Positions 3,001 to 35,230 of a DNA stretch of 64,000 nucleotides are shown one piece after another. Position numbers and translations under genes: made by a program. A model generated the notes under the pieces. The model did no database searches. It was given only the letters and a program-made list of their open reading frames with translations, and was not told the origin of the DNA. Positions within the stretch are counted from its first letter, which is position 1, and each line of letters begins with the position of its first letter. The DNA is from Amphiscolops sp. MND2022 (lineage: Eukaryota): NCBI GenBank assembly GCA_964187785.1, contig OZ076409.1:54250001-54314000 (forward strand). Reading direction: 5' to 3'.

Positions 3001-6000
3001 ATCTACAACCGAGTGAAGAAACATTTTTTGAAGATATATTTCGACCACACTGTGAAGAAGCATTGAAACTTAGAAAATGCTGTCCTAGCTCGAAAGAATG
3101 ATCAAATGATTTACAAGTGCAGCGAACAACTCAGAGCCGGGCGAATTAACTATGCCGCTGATTATGGTGAAAAACTTTCTGCTGTTCCCTGTATTTTTGC
3201 CTTGCTTAAATCTAGCATGAATTGTCTTGTGTGACAAAATAAAGTCAGCAGCCTATTTGGCCAAATATGCAGCAGGAGTAGAGGAAAGGGCGACGGTGCA
3301 AATATACGGAAAGTCTGAATTGACAGTGGAAGTCAGTGTCAAACGAATGAACAACATTAAAATCAATGGACCCAAATTGGCTGCCTTGAAAGAGTGACAG
3401 GAAAAGTAACTCAAAGAAAAAAATCATTGCTGCTACAGAATGTATTTGGAGTATGCTAGGCCTCAAGTACACATTTCCAAACTACGAAGTTATTCATTTC
3501 AGCACGCTGCCTTTGGAACAACGTGGAGGAATCATTAGAACAGACGACAATTGCTCCAGAAATGGAAATAGAGATGTCGAGACCCGAAGTTTCTTTATCA
3601 AGTTCTGACAAGAAACACTGACACTGATACCCTTCTCCTTCGATAAGTTTTTAAATTTGAAGTCTCGTAAATTAGACTCCAGGTTCATTGTCAGCAGACG
3701 ACTGCCTGATGTTTCCACTGGAAATGCACAATTTGTCCTGGAACCACGGTTAAAAATGGAAGATAGTCGACGAGTGGTCAACGAATTAGCGGGAGCTTTT
3801 CGAGATAAAGATGGCACTTTTCTGCTAACAATTACATTAAAGTCTCAAGAAATGTTTGGCGTGGCACCATTGACTATTTTGATTGAGCGAATCACCCAGG
3901 AATGCACAGATGACGGGAGAAAAAGAAAAGAAGGGTTAATGCCTCTGTTCATGATGTTATGGGAAAGAGCTTACACATATTTCAACGAATATTTGATAAA
4001 GTCGCCAGAGAAACCTCTTGGAACAATTATCAGAATATCTCCACGCTTCGAGTTTTAGACGAGTCGACTAACGCGCCTCATATGCATATCGTCATTTGGA
4101 CACTGGAGGATAAATATGACCCAATCATACTGAACAAAGTTGTTGGTAGCTACAGGCAATTGCTGTTCGAGCTAAATAAAATGTATCATTCGCAATCATC
4201 ATTCATAGAATCAGAAAAAGAGCAGGACGAACTGTTGATGCTTACTACAGATGCGAACGAGCATACAGATGTTACAAAAATTCAATGATTTGGGAGAATC
4301 AATTCGTCGTTTCAAAATCTACAACCGAGTGAAGAAACATTTTTTGAAGATATATTTCGACCACACTGTGAAGAAGCATTGAAACTTAGAAAATGCTGTC
4401 CTAGCTCGAAAGAATGATCAAATGATTTACAAGTGCAGCGAACAACTCAGAGCCGGGCGAATTAACTATGCCGCTGATTATGGTGAAAAACTTTCTGCTG
4501 TTCCCTGTATTTTTGCCTTGCTTAAATCTAGCATGAATTGTCTTGTGTGACAAAATAAAGTCAGCAGCCTATTTGGCCAAATATGCAGCAGGAGTAGAGG
4601 AAAGGGCGACGGTGCAAATATACGGAAAGTCTGAATTGACAGTGGAAGTCAGTGTCAAACGAATGAACAACATTAAAATCAATGGACCCAAATTGGCTGC
4701 CTTGAAAGAGTGACAGGAAAAGTAACTCAAAGAAAAAAATCATTGCTGCTACAGAATGTATTTGGAGTATGCTAGGCCTCAAGTACACATTTCCAAACTA
4801 CGAAGTTATTCATTTCAGCACGCTGCCTTTGGAACAACGTGGAGGAATCATTAGAACAGACGACAATTGCTCCAGAAATGGAAATAGAGATGTCGAGACC
4901 CGAAGTTTCTTTATCAAGTTCTGACAAGAAACACTGACACTGATACCCTTCTCCTTCGATAAGTTTTTAAATTTGAAGTCTCGTAAATTAGACTCCAGGT
5001 TCATTGTCAGCAGACGACTGCCTGATGTTTCCACTGGAAATGCACAATTTGTCCTGGAACCACGGTTAAAAATGGAAGATAGTCGACGAGTGGTCAACGA
5101 ATTAGCGGGAGCTTTTCGAGATAAAGATGGCACTTTTCTGCTAACAATTACATTAAAGTCTCAAGAAATGTTTGGCGTGGCACCATTGACTATTTTGATT
5201 GAGCGAATCACCCAGGAATGCACAGATGACAGGAGAAAAAGAAAAGAAGGGTTAATGCCTCTGTTCATGATGTTATGGGAAAGAGCTTACACATATTTCA
5301 ACGAATATTTGATAAAGTCGCCAGAGAAACCTCTTGGAACAATTATCAGAATATCTCCACGCTTCGAGTTTTAGACGAGTCGACTAACGCGCCTCATATG
5401 CATATCGTCATTTGGACACTGGAGGATAAATATGACCCAATCATACTGAACAAAGTTGTTGGTAGCTACAGGCAATTGCTGTTCGAGCTAAATAAAATGT
5501 ATCATTCGCAATCATCATTCATAGAATCAGAAAAAGAGCAGGACGAACTGTTGATGCTTACTACAGATGCGAACGAGCATACAGATGTTACAAAAATTCA
5601 ATGATTTGGGAGAATCAATTCGTCGTTTCAAAATCTACAACCGAGTGAAGAAACATTTTTTGAAGATATATTTCGACCACACTGTGAAGAAGCATTGAAA
5701 CTTAGAAAATGCTGTCCTAGCTCGAAAGAATGATCAAATGATTTACAAGTGCAGCGAACAACTCAGAGCCGGGCGAATTAACTATGCCGCTGATTATGGT
5801 GAAAAACTTTCTGCTGTTCCCTGTATTTTTGCCTTGCTTAAATCTAGCATGAATTGTCTTGTGTGACAAAATAAAGTCAGCAGCCTATTTGGCCAAATAT
5901 GCAGCAGGAGTGGAGGAAAGGGCGACGGTGCAAATATACGGAAAGTCTGAATTGACAGTGGAAGTCAGTGTCAAACGAATGAACAACATTAAAATCAATG

Positions 6001-24438: not shown

Positions 24439-27335
24439 CAGGGAATTGTCAATTGTGAACCAATTTTTTGGAAATAATTGGTGACCAATTAATTGACTTG
24501 CTTTTTGTTCCAATTATTGTCAATTGACAAAAATCTTGCAGTTATTTGAAATTAATTGATCTTTTATCTAAATGCTCCATTGCGTTGCGTCAACTCACTG
24601 CATGTTGTTTATGTGTACTTGATATACATCTGTTGTTCAGTTTTCAGATCAGATAGTAAAACTGCGTCACTTCTATTGCTCTTTGCAACGCGTAAAACTG
24701 CAGATATGGTCAGTCAAAAAGAGATTTGTGCTCGCTATTTCACGGAAACAACACAGAACTAGGATTTTTGGGAATGTGTTTGTCAGAAACAACTCAGTCA
24801 AAAAGCCGGATCAGGTTGGAGAAACTTGTTTTTTTGCATCAAGTCCCATTAACCAGATTGGCAAGGCAAAAGTGCGCAAAGTTTCACGTCATTTATGGTG
24901 CCAGGCATTCTCGCCACTCCTGACAGAAACTACTCTCACAACAGAATCCCTTCATGATTTTATTATATGAGTGGTTGAAACACTCTACAATAAGTCAATA
25001 AACTGCGTTACGGCTCTAATTGGAGACAATTGCGAAACGAATAAAGCCATTGCCAATCTCTTCAATATTTCATTGATTGGCTGCTACTCGCACAGATTCA
25101 ACCTCGCTTTCAAACTTGCTACAGAAAACACAAGCAACGTTTATCAAAAGCGAACATTCTGATGGGCAAATTCAAAGATACGAAAGGTACCTCACCATTA
25201 AAGACCATTTTATGAAATTCGACAGAGTAAGAGATGTCCTGGAGTTGATCCCTTCAGCCAAAGCAAACAGTGATATTGAGGCGTTATTCGAGGATATGAA
25301 AAAAAGGGTAATTCTGTCTGTCACAGCCTAGAGCTTGTGTTGGACCCGTGGAGCAGCAATAGAGGCAAATGACTCGACCATCTATTGTTTCAAACTGGAG
25401 AAAACTTATCACTTCTTGGGACTTGTTTTACATGTAACCATATATGACTTTTGTACACCAGCATTATTCAAATTTGTTTGCCATTATAGTTAACTGTGCT
25501 CGTAAATTAATACCCATTCATAAACAATTCACTAAATGTTACAAGGTGTTAACATATTTGATGTATAATATCGCTCAACATGATTTGTAGTGAAATGAAT
25601 AAATTATGCATGATTTGTATAATGCATTAGTTAATCTGCCACATTGAGTTTGCAGCATATTGCAGTAGAATATTGCTTTTTTCAACTCAATTATATCTTT
25701 TAGAAGTATGACTCATTATGTCGAATTAATCATACGTGCTACGTTATGCTGAGATTAACACCTGCATTACATATGAGTCATACTACGTGTTGCCACATTT
25801 TTCTCATAAAAGATGAACGGAGTGATGCAGTTTGCGTGTTAACCAATCACAGGAAATTATTCGTCATGCAAGATACTTTTAATAGATAATTGTGTCATGT
25901 AAGAATCTATTTATATAATTTTGGAAAATAACGGAGTGCTATTTTTAGCCATTACATAAAAATGATGTAATGATGATTTCCCAAAAATTGGCTGTCATGC
26001 TGCTAAATATAGCCCAAATTAAAAAGGAGAGTAAGGAACCCGATAATATTCATTCAACAGAAAACTTCCAGACTGATCAGACCTCTCTTTTCATCTTCAC
26101 AACCACTGTTTCAGCTTCGATAATTCAACGTTATGCACATTTTCTTCAATTTCATTTCAACCCAATTTTACTTTGCTTCTCAAACCTAATTAAAATTCTT
26201 CTCTCCAACATTGCATTTTAATCTGGCTAAAATGGGAAACAAGAGAAATAGGAGATCTAGACGAGGACAATCACCCTTACTTGAGAGAGAGTTGAGCGCA
26301 TCAGAAATAGAGACATCACAAGGTAATGAAACCGTTATTGAAACTTTAAGTAACTTTGAAAATGTTAGTTCAGTTAGGGACGAAGAAATAGCTCTAGACA
26401 GCGGAACACAAAATGAAAGCGAAATGCAAATTTGGACCCAAAGAATAACAGATAAAACGAACAAAGAAGTAACAAACTTAAGAAAAGAAATGGATGAAAA
26501 ACTAGAGAAAATACTGGAAGAGATGAAAAATAACAGAAGAACACAGTCCGTACCAAACAGAAGATATCGAGAACAAAACACTCCCAAAGCAGGAATCTCG
26601 AAATACATAAGTAATGAGGACGGTGGAGAAAACGCATCTGAACCAGAAAATCAAGAATGTGAGATACAGGATAATCCTTTTAGGCCATCTAATTTAAACG
26701 AACTTAGAACGCCAATACAACCTTTGAGCATACAAAACATTGATTTAAATGACTCTGTGGTCATAAATGAGGACCGCACATGAGAGGATTATCACACTGT
26801 CACATTGTCACTCCAATAAGAAGACATTGATATTGGGGACGGGAAGTGCCTGTTTGATGCATTTATAGTGGAGTATCCGATTATGGAAAGTATTTTTCCC
26901 GGAACGCGCAGATAAAGTACTCCTCAGACTTTGTGAATGCGAATTTGAAAATTGTTGACGGAACTGAATCACAACTTGTTGAGAGAACCTGAATCGGATA
27001 CAGTAGAAAACCTCAAAAAAGTTGTTGTAATTGTTGAAGAGGCCGATGATTCCGTTGACTTTGCTTCGGGTGTCCTTAAGAGAAAAAATCTTGCAAAAAA
27101 TGTGTATCAAAAGCAACTATCAAGACCTCCGCTTCCGGAGTTCAACATCCAATATAGCCGAACGCTTCTTCAGTAAATATGGTTCCGCATTTAACGACTT
27201 ACGACAGAGCACTCTACCAATGAACTAGGAGGTGCGGCTTTTCCGCAATGTGAACCGCCAGTTTTGGTCAAAAACTGATGTCTCTAAAGCTATGAATGAA
27301 ACATTTGAAGAACATTTTAAGCCACTGTCTTCATA
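24439..27335 (+). mobile_element. hAT DNA transposon, degenerate transposase split by solo LTR B
   Basis: A CAGGGAATTG left end is followed by a transposase from ATG 24706 with a BED-like start and LIGDNCETN...[12 protein letters not shown]. After the insert come SVTLSLQ...LFDAFIVEYP and the dimerisation motif SNIAERFFS (~27155). The right TIR was not found. Confidence 0.85.
25319..26796 (+). mobile_element. Long solo LTR (B, 1478 bp) with ORF running to its 3' end
   Basis: It starts TGTCACAGCC and ends GATTATCACA, with a perfect 5-bp TSD CTGTC (25314-25318, 26797-26801). Excision rejoins hAT NSVTLSLQ. The ORF MGNKRNRRSRR... (ATG 26232) has one stop at 26781 and the frame continues EDYH to the terminal A. 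Confidence 0.92.
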
Positions 27336-27555
27336 GCTAGTTAGTAGTTCCAGGAAATTTCCCCAGTTTCGCTTTAACGGACTCTAGATGATCCGGCCTC
27401 CATTTTTTCCGGCCGCGGGGGAGGGCCCTTCTAAAACTAGTCAATTTTCAAAAAAGCTTCTCTATACTAAAGTAGTTGTAGTACGAGATTCCGATTTCAA
27501 AACGTTCTAAGGCTAGATGTTCTATTTCTAGCCAATCGTCCGTGTCAAATTCTTT

Positions 27556-27712
27556 ACGATAGGTTTTCAAGGCATTTTTCATTTGCTTTTTTTGGCGAGT
27601 GCCTGGATGTATCTGAGTGTCTTTAAAGATTGATTCCCTTCTTAATACATATCCCAGGTGTCTTTTGAAGAAGAAATGAAAGAAACATCAAGCGTGTGAT
27701 AAATGTAGAACA
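27556..27712 (+). repeat. 157-bp direct repeat, left copy (right copy 33029-33185), flanking the RTE-type LINE
   Basis: ACGATAGGTTTTCAAGG...TAGAACA is present twice, with 5 substitutions by eye and no indels. Confidence 0.97.
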
Positions 27713-30700
27713 TTTGGCTCTATGGAAATGCCTTCACGAGCGAAGTTAAAGGCGGCATATTGTTTGCGTAACTTTAGACCTAAACTCCCGGCAGAGCCGT
27801 AGGTATGTGTGATAGATACTGTTAAATGTCAACTGAAGTCTGTGATGGGCGGAAGTTGCCCAGCATACGACACCCACAACCAAATTTTTTCCACCTGCTC
27901 ACGGTTGTATCATACTCTGTCCAAGGACAAGTACGAAACTGTAACTCATGTGTATCCACGTTGTGTCCATAACATAGTAAGTCGTGAACCATGGTTGTAA
28001 CGCAACTATCCAAAGTCAAGTATGAAACTGTAACACTTGGGTAAAGCCCACGGTGTGTTTTCAACACGTTAAGTCGTGGCCCAGTCAAAATCGAGTAGCC
28101 AATGACGCAACTCACACTACTCGGTCAGCTGTCCTAGTTTTTTTAATTCGAACAAAGACTTCTGACGACAACCACGTTGAAGTCTTACATGTGTGACCTT
28201 AACTACGTCTCACACTCGCATTTAGGTGTGGGGCAATTGTTCGTGTTCTTGGATCGGCCTCACAAGCCACCAAGTTTCTCCTTAATCTTAGCCTAGTGAA
28301 AAATAATAAAGTTATAGCACAACCGGTTTCTGGAACGATGTCAAGGTCTTTAGTGGAGGACCCCTCACTATACCTAAAAGCATACCTGTGGAATATACGT
28401 ACTCTAAATTCAGCCGATAATAGCGAGTTATTATCGAACACTCTCCTTTCGAGAGAGTTTGACCTAATTGCTCTGGCGGAAACTCACCTGACCAGCAATG
28501 GTTCAAGTGAGATTGAAATCACGGATTTAGATCGTATACAAGGACTGGTCAATCTTGAGGGCGACGCAAGTCGAACCCTCTGCGGTACTGAACAACCAGT
28601 TTGTTCTACTGCCAGGAGGCATGGGAGAGTTTTCTCGACTGGCCACCTAACCGAAAGTAATCGAGACTCTGCAAGTACAAATAGAGCTCACTTAAATGAG
28701 GGCGTAAGTACACGATCCCTCTGCAGAAACGAGGTACCCGCAGCCTCAACTGCCAGAGATACTGGGACACCTGAATCTCTGAACTGTCAGGTAGCTTGTG
28801 AGACAGTCACGAACAGTAGTAGAGACAATGGCGTAAAGAATCGGGGAGGTTTGAAAACCGTCGATACAATTCCCCCGACATCCTCTAACTCTGCTCAAGA
28901 CAATCTCACACTATCAGGAACTGGGAGTACTCTTAGAAAAAGCACTAGGATTAGAACTACTTCACAGGTGAATGGAACAATTGCAACACCTGTAACGGGT
29001 GAAGCAAACTCTAGCCCTAATGAAGAAATTCTACTCACAAATGCAAATTCTAGGGGAAACATACCAGCTGAAGGTATCACAGTCTCCACAGCAACCGCAC
29101 CTAGCCCCCAAGTTTGCTATGGGAACACCGAAGTAAGAGAAGGCTCGCGATGCTTGTTCCACAGTAGTGGCCCAAGTCTGAACGAACCTAACATTGGTGG
29201 AGTGGCATTTGTCCATCCAAAGAGAATTCGGTGTCACTTTTTTGAACCAGTTTCGAATAGAGTGGCACATGGTGTCTTCTCTAAGGAAGGTATTAAATTG
29301 CATGTAGTTGTTGCTTATGCACCGACAGAAACCAATGGTACAACGGAAGAGTATGAGGAGTTCCTAACCCAGTTAGAGAAAACCTGTAACTCGCACCGGC
29401 GTACACCATTACTTGTTCTGGGCGACTACAACGTAACTATTGGCTCGGGGAAAAATGAACTAGTTCCGAAACACATCGGCAAGTGGCTACCAAGTAAAGA
29501 CTCGTCTGAACACGGTAGCTTACTACTCCAATATTGTGTGAAGAATGACCTCATGATCCTCAACTCTTACTTCTCTAAACCACTTGTAAGGAAATGTAGT
29601 TGTGTTCACCCCAAGACTGATGCACTGTCACTCAAGGACTATGCACTAGTCAAGAACAAGGGAGCCGTAAAAGGTCTCTCTATCAGAGATGTAAGAGCTA
29701 GTTGGAAGGAAAGTAATCGGAAAGACCATGCAATGATTGTTATCATTGCTACTCTGCACGGCGATGTCCGGAAAGCGAAAACTCGACCAATGATGACACC
29801 GAAATCTCAACTTTCACAGAGACAAAAATGTGAACACTTCTTACATTCAAAAATGAACCGTAATAAGTTCCGTCAGGAGCTTAAAGGGGAACTGGAGAAA
29901 ATGCCACACCACACTGACTTACCTAGTGTACTGGACAGAGTGGTCTCGACATGTGAGATAGTGGACACACCAGTGGTCAAAACTGATTGTTGGGCGCACT
30001 TTATCACCTCAGAAGGCTGGGGAATACTGAAAAAGCGTGAAATCGCCTACAGAACATACCTTCAGGACAGAAAAAACCCAGCCTTAGCTCAGATCCTAAA
30101 AACCAATAATCAGCTAGTAAAAACGGTCACAAAAAATGCTAGAGAGAAGGCTTTAGAAGCTGATCTGGCCGAGTTCGCTAGATTGAAGGATAATGGGGAC
30201 TTAAGAGGAGCGTACAGGCAACTGAAGGTAACCTCGAGATCCATAAACATCTCCTGGTTTAAGAGGGGACGGAGGAGCGTCGGACCCTCGAAACAGGGTT
30301 TCTGCCGACACTATAGTGAACTCTTCAATGCCAGACCAGCTCCAGGGGACGACGGCATCGCGAGAACCGCGACTCTCACTACCCAGACCCCCCTGGCACC
30401 TTCTGAGTCTGTTAATTCCCAACAAGAGTTAGTGGAAGAGCGGCGCCTATCCGCGAATCCTACTAATGATGACGGTAGAGGAACACAGACAGAGTTGGTG
30501 AGGGCACTCCCTCATGCATGTGGCTTGGTTGATGAAGAGCCTGACGGCCCCACTCAGTACGATGTCTAAGTCGCTCTAACGCTGAGTAAGAGAGGCAAGG
30601 CGCCGAGCTTGAGCGGGATCACAACGGACCTTCTGAAAACTTTTTCGGATTTGCTAGTAGGGCCACTCCTGGAGCTATTCCAAGTTCATTGGGACAATCC

Positions 30701-33028
30701 AGACTCTGTGCCTCAGAGGTACAAGGATGCCAAGGTGATATCTCTATTCAAAAAAAGGAACCGTAAAGATCCCAGCAACTACTGAGGAATCTTCCTTCTA
30801 GATTCCATAGGTAAGCTCTTTTGTCGAATAGTGTATCGCAGACTCCTGGACTTCTACGGCACGAGAATGGACCCCTACCAGTTTGGCTTCGGTAAACAAC
30901 GAAGTACAGCACAGGCCGTTTAGACCCTGCGAAACCTGATACAAAGGGCCAGAGACCTAAAAAATTGCATGTACCTAGTGTTCATCGACCTTGTCAAAGC
31001 ATTTGATACAGTAGACAGACCTCTAATATTCAAAACACTGGCAGATCTTGGCTTAGCACCAATTGTGCGCAATTTGGTTGAAGCAATTCACACAACTCCA
31101 CATGGAGAGATAACCTCTAAAAGTCGCTTTGCAGTTGAAAGAGGTGTAAGACAAGTGTGTGTAGTGGGCCCCTTCCTATTCAACATTGCAATGGACTACT
31201 TATGCAGGAAATCACTGAATTGCGCGGATCGAGGCTCCACTCTCATTGATCACCTCGCATACGCTGACGACTTAGTGTTGATAGCATATGACGAGAAGAC
31301 TATGCACTTAAAACTGCAGAATCCGAACAATGAGATCATGAAGTTTGGCATGGAAACTTCTGTCAAAAAGACTAAGTGCTTAATTGCGAGTGGGAACACA
31401 AACAAGCCACTGTCTGACATTAAGTTACCAGACGGTCCGAGAGAACAAGTTAACAGTTTCAACTATCTGGGTTGTATAATTGATACTGACAATGACCAGG
31501 CGAGCTTAGTTAGAAATAATTCCACGAAAGCCAGAATTGGACCTGTAAAGTTAAGAGCTGCACTTGTAAATTGATCTTTGACTTTTAAAGTAAAAGCGAG
31601 CCTGCCCGAAGTCTTTATCAAACCAATACTCCTCTATGGTCTTGAGACTGGTGTGACTCGTGAGAGTGACTTGTCTAAATTAAATGCTGTTCTTAATAAG
31701 GCCAGAAGACTGATCCTGCGTGTACAGAACAAACAGGAAATCAGATGTGCTCATCTGGCTGAGCCGATTCAGCTGAGAGACATCCGCATAGAGCTGTGAA
31801 TCAGAAGACTGAACCTATGGTACAGTCTCAAATCCCTCGGGGTTGAGTCAGTCCTGGGCACAGTCAACGATTCCAAAATCTGGCAGCGATGCTGGATGAA
31901 ACAGCTCGAACGCGCTGTGCTAAGCCTCGGCTTAACCTCAGACTGGATTGATGCGCCATTTCGAGTAGGCTTCAGATGTCAAAAAATAGTGCGTGAAGTC
32001 TCTGTAGTGGGAACAAGAACTCACACACTAGAATGCCTTTTTGAGGGTTGTAACTTGACATTCGCCGAAGCCAAAGAACACAATAGACACACTCTCAGAG
32101 ACCACACATCACTATCGGCACAAAGTGTACAATTTGATCTACAAAAGGCAACTTCGTTTGGATGTCCAAAGTCAAATTGTAGTAAGTCCTTTAAAACTAA
32201 AGGCTGGCTCAAATCTCACTTGCAGAAAAACCACAAAAGCGGATCCTTCCTAGGTAACACTTTTGTGTATGCCTCAGAGAATGATGAAATTTCTGTGAAT
32301 GAAGTCCCTGATGAACTGCAGACCGGCCCCAGTGCCAATAGTCAACCCCAGGCATCAAACTTCATCAGAAATAAACGAAGGAGAGCTCTTCGGAGTAATC
32401 CTACCGGAACTGTCGAAATGAGGAACACTCAAGTAGCAAATAGGGGAAGTCTGATAACCGCAGATCCTAGATGCTCTGAGATCCTCAACAACACCGAAAA
32501 TATCACCCTGTCAAGCTCTGACACCTATGCACAGGGAATAATAGCTGCCTCAACGGGTCCTGACATCGCGATGACAGGTAGGCCACCCGGAGGGGTAGTG
32601 AAACTCCCAAAGTGAAATGTCGGTTTCCCGGTTGCCCCAAAGAGCTCCAAACTCTAAAAGGCATCGTGAACCACATGTCACCCGTACATAGAATGTCTTA
32701 CGCCACAGGAGGTATGGTGAGAGCGAGGGCTACAAAGCGGCCCGGTCCCGTGCTTTTTTAGACCAATGTCTTCTAACGTCTGGTCACGTGCATTTACTAA
32801 ATATCGAAAAGTGTCACTTAGATATGGATGTATCTGACTGACGAGGTAGGTGAAAACCTGTAATAAATGAAGCCTACCAATGAATCACCCTCATACACTC
32901 CTGCCTCTAAGTGGCAACTGTTCCACGTTGTTGGAAATAGATAACTAGCAAAAACTTTAAACTTCTTAAAGGCCCATGGCTACATACCGGAGAGCCTAGG
33001 ATTCCATCGTGGCTCAATGGGAGAAGGC
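27713..33028 (+). mobile_element. RTE-type non-LTR retrotransposon, apparently full length
   Basis: A single frame 28296-32615 encodes an APE endonuclease (WNIRTL, ALAETH, YAPT, LGDYN, KDY, KDH), an RT (GKAP, NY*GI, FIDLVKAFDTV, GVRQ, YADD) and two C-terminal C2H2 fingers. The element is bounded by the 157-bp repeats. Confidence 0.92.
28296..32615 (+). pseudogene. EN-RT-C2H2 polyprotein (~1439 codons) with 5 premature stops and no frameshift
   Basis: The ORF track pieces starting at 28296, 30969, 31578 and 31896 are all in one frame. In-frame stops lie at 30567, 30783, 30921, 31572 and 31797. The fingers read CLFEGC...HNRHTLRDH and CPKSNC...HLQKNH. Confidence 0.9.
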
Positions 33029-33185
33029 ACGATAGGTTTTCAAGGCGTTTTTCCTTTGCTTCTTTTGGCGAGTGCCTGGATGTATCTGAGTGTCTTTAAA
33101 GATTGATTCCCTTCTTAATACAAATCCCAGGTGTCTTTTGAAGAAGAAATGAAAGAAACATCAAGCGTGTGATAAATTTAGAACA
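33029..33185 (+). repeat. 157-bp direct repeat, right copy
   Basis: It matches 27556-27712. Confidence 0.97.
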
Positions 33186-33949
33186 AAGTAATCCTACACG
33201 TAGTAAATGAGGTTGAAAAAGATAGGCGTGTATGATATAAACCAACAATAAAAATGGTGATAGACAAATTTGATTACATGTCGTTATAGAGAATCAATTG
33301 TATTGCATGTGAGAATATGAGTCTCAATTACAGGCGGATCAGAATGTTGTGACATTTGTTGGTGCATTTCGGTAAATACTTGTTGAAGCTCTAACTGGAA
33401 CCCAAATTTTGTTTACATTGGACACTTAACGCATCCTCTTCTTTTCCGGACAGTGTTGCCAACCTCCTAGAGAGTCACCTTGCGTGGTTCGTAATGTTCC
33501 TGAGAATTCAAAATGTACGAGATATAAACAGCAAGATGTCAGCCTTTTCATTAACCATCTGTGGAACTTAGGTGGAAAAATACTTTCAACAAGTCGTTTC
33601 AGAAATGTTGCACCAAAACTCCACCAGCTTGTAACATTCTATCGCCCCTTTTCAACTACCAAAAATATGAAGTTGTCAAAATATGATAAATGCTGATTGG
33701 CAATTCTTTCGCCTTAACCGATTACGCTTGGAATATTGGCAGACGTTTTCCTCGGTGTGTCGTTGTGGCAAATGTAAGGAGACTGCATTTCTTTCTGGTA
33801 TGTGATCAATACCATGACATCAGACCTGAAGACATTGACTCATGGAATCTCCTAGACCCTGAAGACTGTAATATCATTATTGACTACGTCTCACATTCAA
33901 CGAAGTTAAACGGAAATGTATAACTCTTCGTTAATGCCTAACCTACTTT

Positions 33950-35230
33950 TATCCAACTCTTAATGCTTTTTTTGTACACCATGTCTGCCACCATAATGCC
34001 ACCATGTCTCAAATTAACTGCCTTGAATTTTCAAGTGTTCACTCTGATGGCGTTAATTGGCAATAAATTGCGATGTCGTCCATGCTTTTTCGAACTGTTA
34101 CAATGTTCTCCCAATAACTAGGTCATCACCATAGAAGAATGAATCACAATCAAGATTTTGTAGAAAATGGTTCAAGTCGATTATGTTGAGGCTAAAATGA
34201 AGCGGGCATAACTTGTCTCCCTGAGCAACACCTCTCGATTGAGCGATTTGTCGAGATCTAAGTCCACTACCGAAAATGTATTGGTAGTTTGTCGCAATTT
34301 TGCTTTTGAGTGTTTTGAGGATTCAGCCAAGAATCCCGAAGCAAAACAACTGTTCAACTAGGTCTCTATCTACCGTGTCAAAAGTCTTTTCATAACAAGC
34401 ATAACAGTTTTGACACATGCCAACATTGTGTAATTTTGGTTCTGACTGAAGTGAATGCGTTTATTGTTGATTTCTTCGCTCGGAAACAGTACTCTGTAGG
34501 TGGAAGGATATACTGGGCTCAAGTATCCAGTCTTTTGTGATTAATTCCGTAAAGATGTTGTATACAGACCAGAAGACGAATAGCTTTTTAGAGGGGTTTC
34601 TCGTAGGAGTAGTTCCGACATATTGGAGTTTTTCCATTTCCTAAGCACACTTGGAAATGCCTGTAAGATAAAGAATTATGTTTCCAAAAATAGGTTTCAG
34701 AAATTCGTTGGTTAAGCCATCCTGTCCACATTCTTTATTAATAGACGCATAGTAAGTTTCCACCAAACTCTCGACATCTGTAAGATCATCGTTAAGAAAT
34801 TAGGGACATTTCCTGTTGGATAAGTAGTAGTCATGATTGCCCGTGTTGGTGTTTTCAGTAACAGGTACAATATTAGGATCGGGAATGTGATACAGAATCT
34901 CGAATAGAGACTGGCAATCCGAGAAAAGAATTTGAGTTAGTGTCTCGATGCAATTTTTCAATCTGAGTATGTCCCGTAATTGGTTTTTATTTGATTCACC
35001 AACAGAGTAAATTTCAGATTTTTTCTTCGGAAAAAACTGTTTCTTTTTGTATTTCATCCTTCGTTTGTAGAGCTTCTCTGTCTCACTATGTTTCTTTGGG
35101 TCAAACATATGAGCGCGATACAACTTTTCAAGGTATTGGTTGAAACTAAAACTTTCTTCAAGAAACGATGGTTTCGAGTTCCATGGGTTCCGGCTGATGG
35201 CTGATTTCTTTGTTTTATCATACATTATCA
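33950..35230 (-). mobile_element. Non-LTR retrotransposon RT fragment (degenerate)
   Basis: The minus strand reads YCFRAKKST, KKTFDTVDR, GVAQGDKLCPLHF and FFYGDDLVIG (~34110-34480), preceded by the linker ORF 34800-35231. Confidence 0.75.

Follow-up and report, generated by a model that had tools for sequence, protein, structure and literature searches.

A probable 28S-preferring APE-type LINE with long, variable target-site duplications in Amphiscolops sp. MND2022

The element studied here is a retrotransposon without long terminal repeats (non-LTR retrotransposon, or long interspersed nuclear element, LINE) in the genome of Amphiscolops sp. MND2022. It lies in a 64,000-nucleotide stretch of contig OZ076409.1, here termed C1 (C1:54,250,001-54,314,000 of the 1.07-Gb genome); this stretch is called the window, and positions given without a contig are counted from its first letter. 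Our preferred reading, to which we assign a probability of roughly 0.8, is that the element belongs to a family of LINEs with an APE endonuclease and a preference for 28S ribosomal DNA (rDNA), and that the window copy, an old, inactivated, full-length member of this family, resides at a look-alike of the 28S site, flanked by a giant target-site duplication (TSD).

Locus-specific target-site duplications

A repeat search of positions 26500-34500 returned a sole long direct-repeat family, a pair of 157-nt repeats at 27556-27712 and 33029-33185 (both + strand) that are 97% identical, differ by 5 mismatches and lie 5,473 bp apart from start to start. The match between the two 157-mers ends at the repeat edges, and the flanking sequence on either side is unlike. 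The ends of the element were defined by its relatives, about 15 other copies in the genome: a search with both junction regions hit the 3′ end 14 times at 90-94% identity and several times more at 72-82%, and 5′ ends are also present in eight or nine young (90-94%) copies. The matches of all copies end at element position 5316 (window position 33028) and at positions 1-6 (27713-27718). As the family-wide match ends at 27713 and 33028, the element occupies positions 27713-33028 of the + strand (5,316 bp), the exact interval between the 157-mers, and the direct repeats adjoin its termini at 27712|27713 and 33028|33029. An earlier reading of this DNA from its letters (the original prediction) had described a 5.3-kb element exactly bracketed by 157-bp repeats with five mismatches, which the repeat search and the family-defined ends confirm. 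It had also considered the few nonsense changes of the element compatible with the decay of the repeats. This agrees with our data: the 3.2% divergence of the two 157-mers dates the insertion and is compatible with a coding sequence of about 4.3 kb that contains five in-frame stops and is free of frameshifts.

As determined by genome searches, the whole 157-mer has no second locus, and only parts of it recur. One part, positions 1-111, forms with about 110 bp of the upstream flank a stretch (27446-27666, no strand assigned) that resembles an older dispersed repeat at 75-85% identity, while positions 113-157 and about 150 bp of downstream flank match another old repeat, different from the first (33141-33337, likewise without strand). 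Paralogues of the upstream repeat run uninterrupted over the left edge of the TSD, and a paralogue of the downstream repeat (L033) does so over the right edge, as is expected of a single-copy pre-insertion site.

TSDs were measured throughout the family by pairing the upstream and downstream flanks of nine copies with both ends. Nine different flanking repeats were obtained, each adjoining its element: 422 bp (98.8% identity) at C7:6.73 Mb, 157 bp (97%) in the window on C1, about 104 bp at C7:35.0 Mb, where the 5′ copy was later split by a 273-bp insertion, 81 bp (100%) at C2:100.9 Mb, about 48 bp at C9:22.76 Mb, 32 bp at C6:36.3 Mb, 14 bp at C3:7.13 Mb, 13 bp at C8:60.26 Mb and 11 bp at C2:75.4 Mb. 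The TSD thus exceeds 100 bp in three of the nine copies and 45 bp in five. Because the flanking repeats are locus-specific and variable in length, they are target-site duplications. These data support that the 157-bp repeats are a genuine giant TSD and that long, variable TSDs are a trait of the family. At the diverged copies C8:55.45 Mb and C1:79.02 Mb a TSD was not detectable, and the downstream flanks of three copies lacking a known 5′ end revealed no nearby long duplicate, the search being exhaustive for C8:48.5 Mb (L022) only.

The original prediction had left a choice between a giant TSD arising from widely staggered nicks and a terminal or preferred target repeat, and had named other copies of the family as the arbiter. 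The private repeats of nine copies (11-422 bp) and the paralogues that cross both outer edges support the giant TSD. The new architecture with terminal repeats that had been envisaged is not borne out. A preference for the 157-mer as a target likewise fails, as no other copy has it, but a site preference of another kind does exist: a 28S-like motif at the first nick.

Insertions in 28S rDNA and at look-alike sites

Three LINE copies, E1, E2 and E3 in contig order, are located on the unplaced contig C867, and their flanks are 28S rRNA sequence. With the Rfam model LSU_rRNA_eukarya, the 1.5 kb upstream of E2 reached 426 bits, the sequence downstream of E3 268 bits and that upstream of E1 217 bits. 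The insertion point in 28S reads ...GGTGTCAGAAAAGTT|ACCACAGGGAT|AACTGG..., and the contig runs from a 28S 5′ part through E2 (a full-length LINE), a block X of 830 bp, E3 (a 5′-truncated LINE) and a further X block into the 28S 3′ part. The two X blocks are 97.4% identical, and each consists of ACCACAGGGAT, a sequence Y of about 808 bp and again ACCACAGGGAT. As Y lies between two copies of ACCACAGGGAT, it is a small element whose insertion into 28S duplicated 11 bp. The duplication on either side of E3 is 830 bp long; it begins at the first-nick site of 28S, and its end coincides exactly with the point at which 28S resumes. On C867:9224-26684 a second 28S 5′ part follows E1, and the contig is therefore an rDNA unit that was either rearranged or mis-joined.

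The genome assembly contains four copies of this 28S stretch, two on C867, one on C1124 and one at C6:29.066 Mb, and three of them are interrupted at one nucleotide, either by the LINE or by Y. The stretch on C1124 (10259-10766) is uninterrupted; the one on C6 (C6:29066095-29068327) harbours two tandem Y elements at the common 28S point. E2, E3 and Y on C867 and the Y dimer on C6 are all found at GTT|ACCAC, which amounts to at least four separate insertions at a single 28S nucleotide, that is, to repeated, sequence-specific use of a multicopy RNA gene as target. In literature searches, no paper turned up with a retroelement at the 28S sequence ACCACAGGGATAAC.

Y, represented by L020:1926-2755 (C867:20638-21467), has 5′ and 3′ sequence blocks in common with the LINE, namely a LINE-like start GGCTCTGTTCGAGGTTGCCTTCACGAG and the 3′ block GGCCCATGGCTACATA...GGC. 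At least 50 dispersed copies of 88-97% identity were found, often in head-to-tail arrays (for example C6:63956272-63960559). ARAGORN detected no tRNA-like head on the Y-related repeats of about 1.5 kb (L060, L061 and L063). Y is probably a non-autonomous partner of the LINE. On its own strand, each of the two presumed 28S nick sites reads T^AACT, and the two are 11 bp apart, which makes the target quasi-palindromic (L048:1451-1479, L024:2744-2760).

The nine dispersed targets were aligned at the start of their duplications and compared with 16 positions of the 28S site, GTGTCAGAAAAGTT|AC. GTGT occupies positions -14 to -11 in six of the nine, and two further targets match three of these four positions. 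Next to the nick, T is found at -1 in eight targets, A at +1 in all nine and C at +2 in eight, so that the dispersed consensus GTGTnAnAnAnnnT|AC stands beside the 28S sequence GTGTCAGAAAAGTT|AC. In the window the first-nick motif is GTGTCAAATTCTTT|AC (27542-27557, + strand) and agrees with the 28S site at 11 of 16 positions. When nine 24-mers were drawn at random from the window 200,000 times, no set contained six sequences sharing a 4-mer at one offset. Moreover, eight of the nine targets match the 28S site at 9-14 of 16 positions, a value of at least 9 being reached by about 1.2% of random 16-mers. The target sequences indicate that the first nick is sequence-directed and that the window copy is an off-target insertion at a 28S look-alike on C1. 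By function, the family is an rDNA-homing retrotransposon, with a common position in an rRNA gene and off-target copies at look-alike sites.

Element structure and relatives

The window copy begins with a 5′ untranslated region (UTR) at 27713-28295 (+ strand, as all features of the element), which contains one copy of a unit of about 370 bp (27713-28085). This unit is also single in the C9 copy but is tandemly doubled in six other full-length copies (C7:6.73 Mb, C2:100.9 Mb, C2:75.4 Mb, C7:35.0 Mb, C867 and C8:60.26 Mb; L044-L049). At several 5′ junctions there are 8-24 additional nucleotides or microhomology, which is usual for the 5′ ends of LINEs. Only one open reading frame (ORF) follows at 28296-32615, with about 1,440 codons in one frame and in-frame stops at 30567-9, 30783-5, 30921-3, 31572-4 and 31797-9. 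It encodes an APE endonuclease with a Ser/Thr/Asn-rich insert (insert at about 28530-29130), downstream of it a reverse transcriptase (about 30600-31570) and, at the C-terminus, C2H2 zinc fingers (about 32031-32258). No + strand ORF of more than 63 aa that could be a gag-like ORF1 was found upstream of the APE frame. The ORF-opening ATG of the window copy (..GTMSRSL.., 28296-28340) is Thr in most other copies (..GTTSKSL..; L036-L043), and in most sister copies the open frame begins further upstream with no obvious ATG.

The 3′ UTR spans 32616-33028, and its last 100 nt or so are conserved across subfamilies. In intact sister copies the frame stays open for about 130 nt beyond the stop of the window copy, and the length of the 3′ UTR is about 280-410 bp. 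All copies terminate in ...GGGAGAAGGC, with no poly(A), no microsatellite and no AT-rich short repeats, in line with the original prediction, which had seen no poly(A) or microsatellite tail in the window copy. A search for a 3′-terminal hairpin gave no convincing covariation.

In Pfam searches RVT_1 was matched at 4e-20 by the window copy and at 2e-37 by the 94%-identical protein P0001; the match to Exo_endo_phos_2 and the C2H2 matches close to the C-terminus were weak. An exhaustive search recovered a group of APE-reverse transcriptase-C2H2 proteins of 1,100-1,240 aa at 37-39% identity. The alignment comprised 11 relatives, P0001 and ten proteins of 880-1,242 aa with 37-39% identity. They all keep the APE and reverse transcriptase motifs, two invariant Cys2-His2 sets and a third, nearly invariant set near the C-terminus. 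Compared with the PDB, the family profile matched human L1 ORF2p over APE and reverse transcriptase (4e-52) and exonuclease III (1e-8), and its C-terminal part matched the DNA-binding C2H2 proteins YY1, FZF1, ZNF410, GLI and TFIIIA (9e-5 to 0.03). The endonuclease chains of R1Bm and TRAS1 were absent from these matches at E<=1, and in the reverse transcriptase L1 and R2 were at equal distance. The Ser/Thr/Asn-rich insert of about 250 aa lies inside the APE domain, between ...AETHLTSNG and ...FHSSGP...GGVAF, in all family copies examined, whereas the APE domain of the 37-39% relatives is contiguous and insert-free (for example P0021, residues 24-255).

Protein searches (word-index, exhaustive and ESM Atlas) returned no names that tell the clade, those in the ESM Atlas being generic, and DUF6451, present in more distant relatives, yielded no link to any clade. 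Distant metagenome relatives (25-28% identity) had no rRNA in their flanks. One of the APE-reverse transcriptase-C2H2 relatives at 37-39% identity is labelled as a Thiodiazotropha metagenome-assembled genome, which is probably contamination from the host.

The original prediction had labelled the element RTE-type. Like RTE elements, it has a single ORF with APE and reverse transcriptase and no poly(A) tail, and it shares with them a split insertion signature, in which the start of the TSD is preceded, at a distance of about one helical turn, by a recognition element (PMC6007223). RTE elements measure 3.2-3.9 kb, encode 920-1,066 aa and have a very short 3′ UTR of AT-rich tri- to pentamer repeats (PMC1291365), and their TSDs are mostly 7-15 bp (PMC6007223). 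In contrast, the LINE described here has 5,316 bp, about 1,440 codons, additional conserved C2H2 fingers and a repeat-free 3′ UTR of about 280-410 bp ending in ...GGGAGAAGGC. Judged by these structural hallmarks, the RTE assignment is not supported. For the direct repeats of about 200 bp that had been ascribed to C. elegans RTE-1, literature searches found no support.

Alternative readings and the proposed mechanism

Three other explanations of the long repeats were weighed. If the 157-mer were encoded by the element as a terminal repeat, or were a repeat preferred as a target, the exact bracketing of the element and the diverged, partial matches of the 157-mer elsewhere in the genome would find an explanation. 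Yet the 157-mer occurs at neither end of any other family copy, every other copy has a different flanking repeat, and the partial matches represent two unrelated older repeats that are nowhere near other family copies; this explanation is hardly credible. An ordinary insertion with a short TSD into a pre-existing local tandem duplication, by which the long repeats would be older than the insertion, gains some ground from copies that do reside in arrays, at C6:64.37 Mb (2.25-kb period) and on C9 between tandem Y elements. Against it, the repeats adjoin both ends to the nucleotide at no fewer than four independent loci (157, 422, 81 and 32 bp), the 157-mer bridges two old repeats at a unique junction and is non-tandem in their paralogues, and a repeat identity of 97-100% is far younger than the surrounding old repeats (75-85%). 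We consider such an origin very unlikely.

It is also conceivable, although improbable, that a LINE of a generic, non-specific kind, possibly belonging to the RTE group, owes its long TSDs to host repair only, the rDNA copies and the GTGT being incidental. In human cells the median TSD of L1 is indeed either 14 bp or about 1.5 kb, depending on the nucleotide-excision repair (NER) of the host (PMC5223499). This account is countered by the target motif, which lies far outside chance expectation and coincides with the 28S site, by one 28S nucleotide having received the LINE or Y on at least four separate occasions, and by the RTE hallmarks that the element lacks (PMC1291365).

Several points weigh against our preferred reading of a 28S-homing LINE with giant TSDs. 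The evidence from rDNA consists of one unplaced contig and one chromosomal rDNA copy, rDNA being collapsed in assemblies, and the 830-bp repeat around E3 may also derive from unequal crossing-over. Only nine copies were examined with both ends. Among their targets the one on C9 departs from the motif and sits between tandem Y-type elements, and the right-hand (second-nick) edges of the dispersed TSDs revealed no motif in common. In the search for an empty allele, reads gave no joint that skips the element, and contigs from each of two samples contain the 5′ junction.

For the insertion of the 28S-preferring LINE we propose that recognition of the sequence would position the bottom-strand nick, a role for which the conserved C2H2 fingers at the C-terminus are plausible candidates. 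The upstream motif may be read by the fingers or by the endonuclease. Synthesis of cDNA would be primed from the bottom-strand nick, with A or AC as microhomology to the RNA end ...GGCA. The top-strand break, in 28S presumably at ...GGGAT|AACTGG, would be chosen independently of the first nick rather than measured from it, and repair synthesis would copy the interval between the two breaks, 157 bp in the case of the window copy. The duplication amounts to 11 bp for Y in 28S and to about 830 bp where a resident Y had already split the 28S site; paired T^AACT nick sites could account for the 830-bp duplication as well as for the short one at the home site. At off-target sites without the downstream half-site, the second break may occur wherever a usable break arises, perhaps by chance or with the help of host factors, as has been proposed for human L1 (PMC5223499). 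This rule for the second nick is what we infer from the lengths of the duplications. More tentatively still, and with more doubt than confidence, we suggest that the family represents an undescribed lineage of APE-type, single-ORF LINEs that homes to 28S by means of C2H2 fingers, has a partner of about 808 bp and specifies its two breaks independently.

The second-strand cut is the least understood step of target-primed reverse transcription. If the proposal is true, the TSD equals the distance between the half-sites, 11 bp in intact 28S, about 830 bp with a resident element between them and tens to hundreds of bp off-target, and the family is a natural system for how the second-strand break of LINE integration is chosen. 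A sequence-defined first nick, combined with short duplications at the home site versus long, variable ones elsewhere, would offer a direct and countable read-out of this second step. The family also shows that stretches of host DNA hundreds of bases long are duplicated when LINEs insert in this animal.

According to PMC4640811, the target-specific LINEs with an APE-type endonuclease that are known to date belong to the R1 and Tx1 clades. The R1/RT elements of arthropods resemble the present LINE in their APE endonuclease and in a fixed 28S position at which their TSD is short and of fixed length. Compared with R1, our LINE lacks a gag-like ORF1, C2H2 fingers take the place of a CCHC motif at the end of its single ORF, its profile has no match to the R1Bm or TRAS1 endonuclease at E<=1, its 28S position is about 450 model positions downstream of the R1 site, and many of its copies are dispersed off-target. 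R9 of bdelloid rotifers is, to the extent that PMC9977147 and PMC5035012 relate it in citing Gladyshev and Arkhipova 2009, a further rDNA-specific non-LTR element with an exceptionally long TSD (126 bp). R9 belongs to the R2 lineage, has a restriction-like endonuclease and generates a fixed TSD, whereas the LINE described here is APE-type and its long, variable TSDs occur off-target or at pre-occupied sites; within rDNA, 126 bp in R9 contrast with a short duplication here (11 bp for Y).

With respect to the length of the duplications, fewer than 10% of human L1 events in HeLa cells, but most of those in NER-deficient cells, have TSDs of more than 100 bp, and large L1 TSDs are a known outcome of a displaced second nick (PMC5223499). 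Dualen-4b of Chlamydomonas has a median TSD of 900 bp (PMC9977147). In L1 and Dualen-4b, as in our LINE, the TSD is the distance between two uncoupled nicks; what distinguishes the present family is that its long TSDs are found in natural fixed copies and are coupled with a sequence-specific first nick. Long TSDs of LINEs were thus already known from R9 and Dualen-4b, and the new aspects are the 28S homing of the family and the degenerate 28S sites at its dispersed copies. An APE-type element with C2H2 fingers would join the short list of rDNA-homing retrotransposons, which are of interest as site-specific insertion tools.

Two further observations concern the surroundings of individual copies. 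At C6:64367125-64381787 (L064-L066) a diverged LINE copy (81%) is located inside a tandem array with a period of about 2.25 kb. This array adjoins three tandem Y elements (C6:64364615-64367126), and the LINE copy there is uninformative for the TSD. In the downstream flank L026 (C7:54206615-54207214), an 89-bp segment (query positions 88-176) recurs at 97-99% identity in many places on C1 and C2 and is a very young short repeat.

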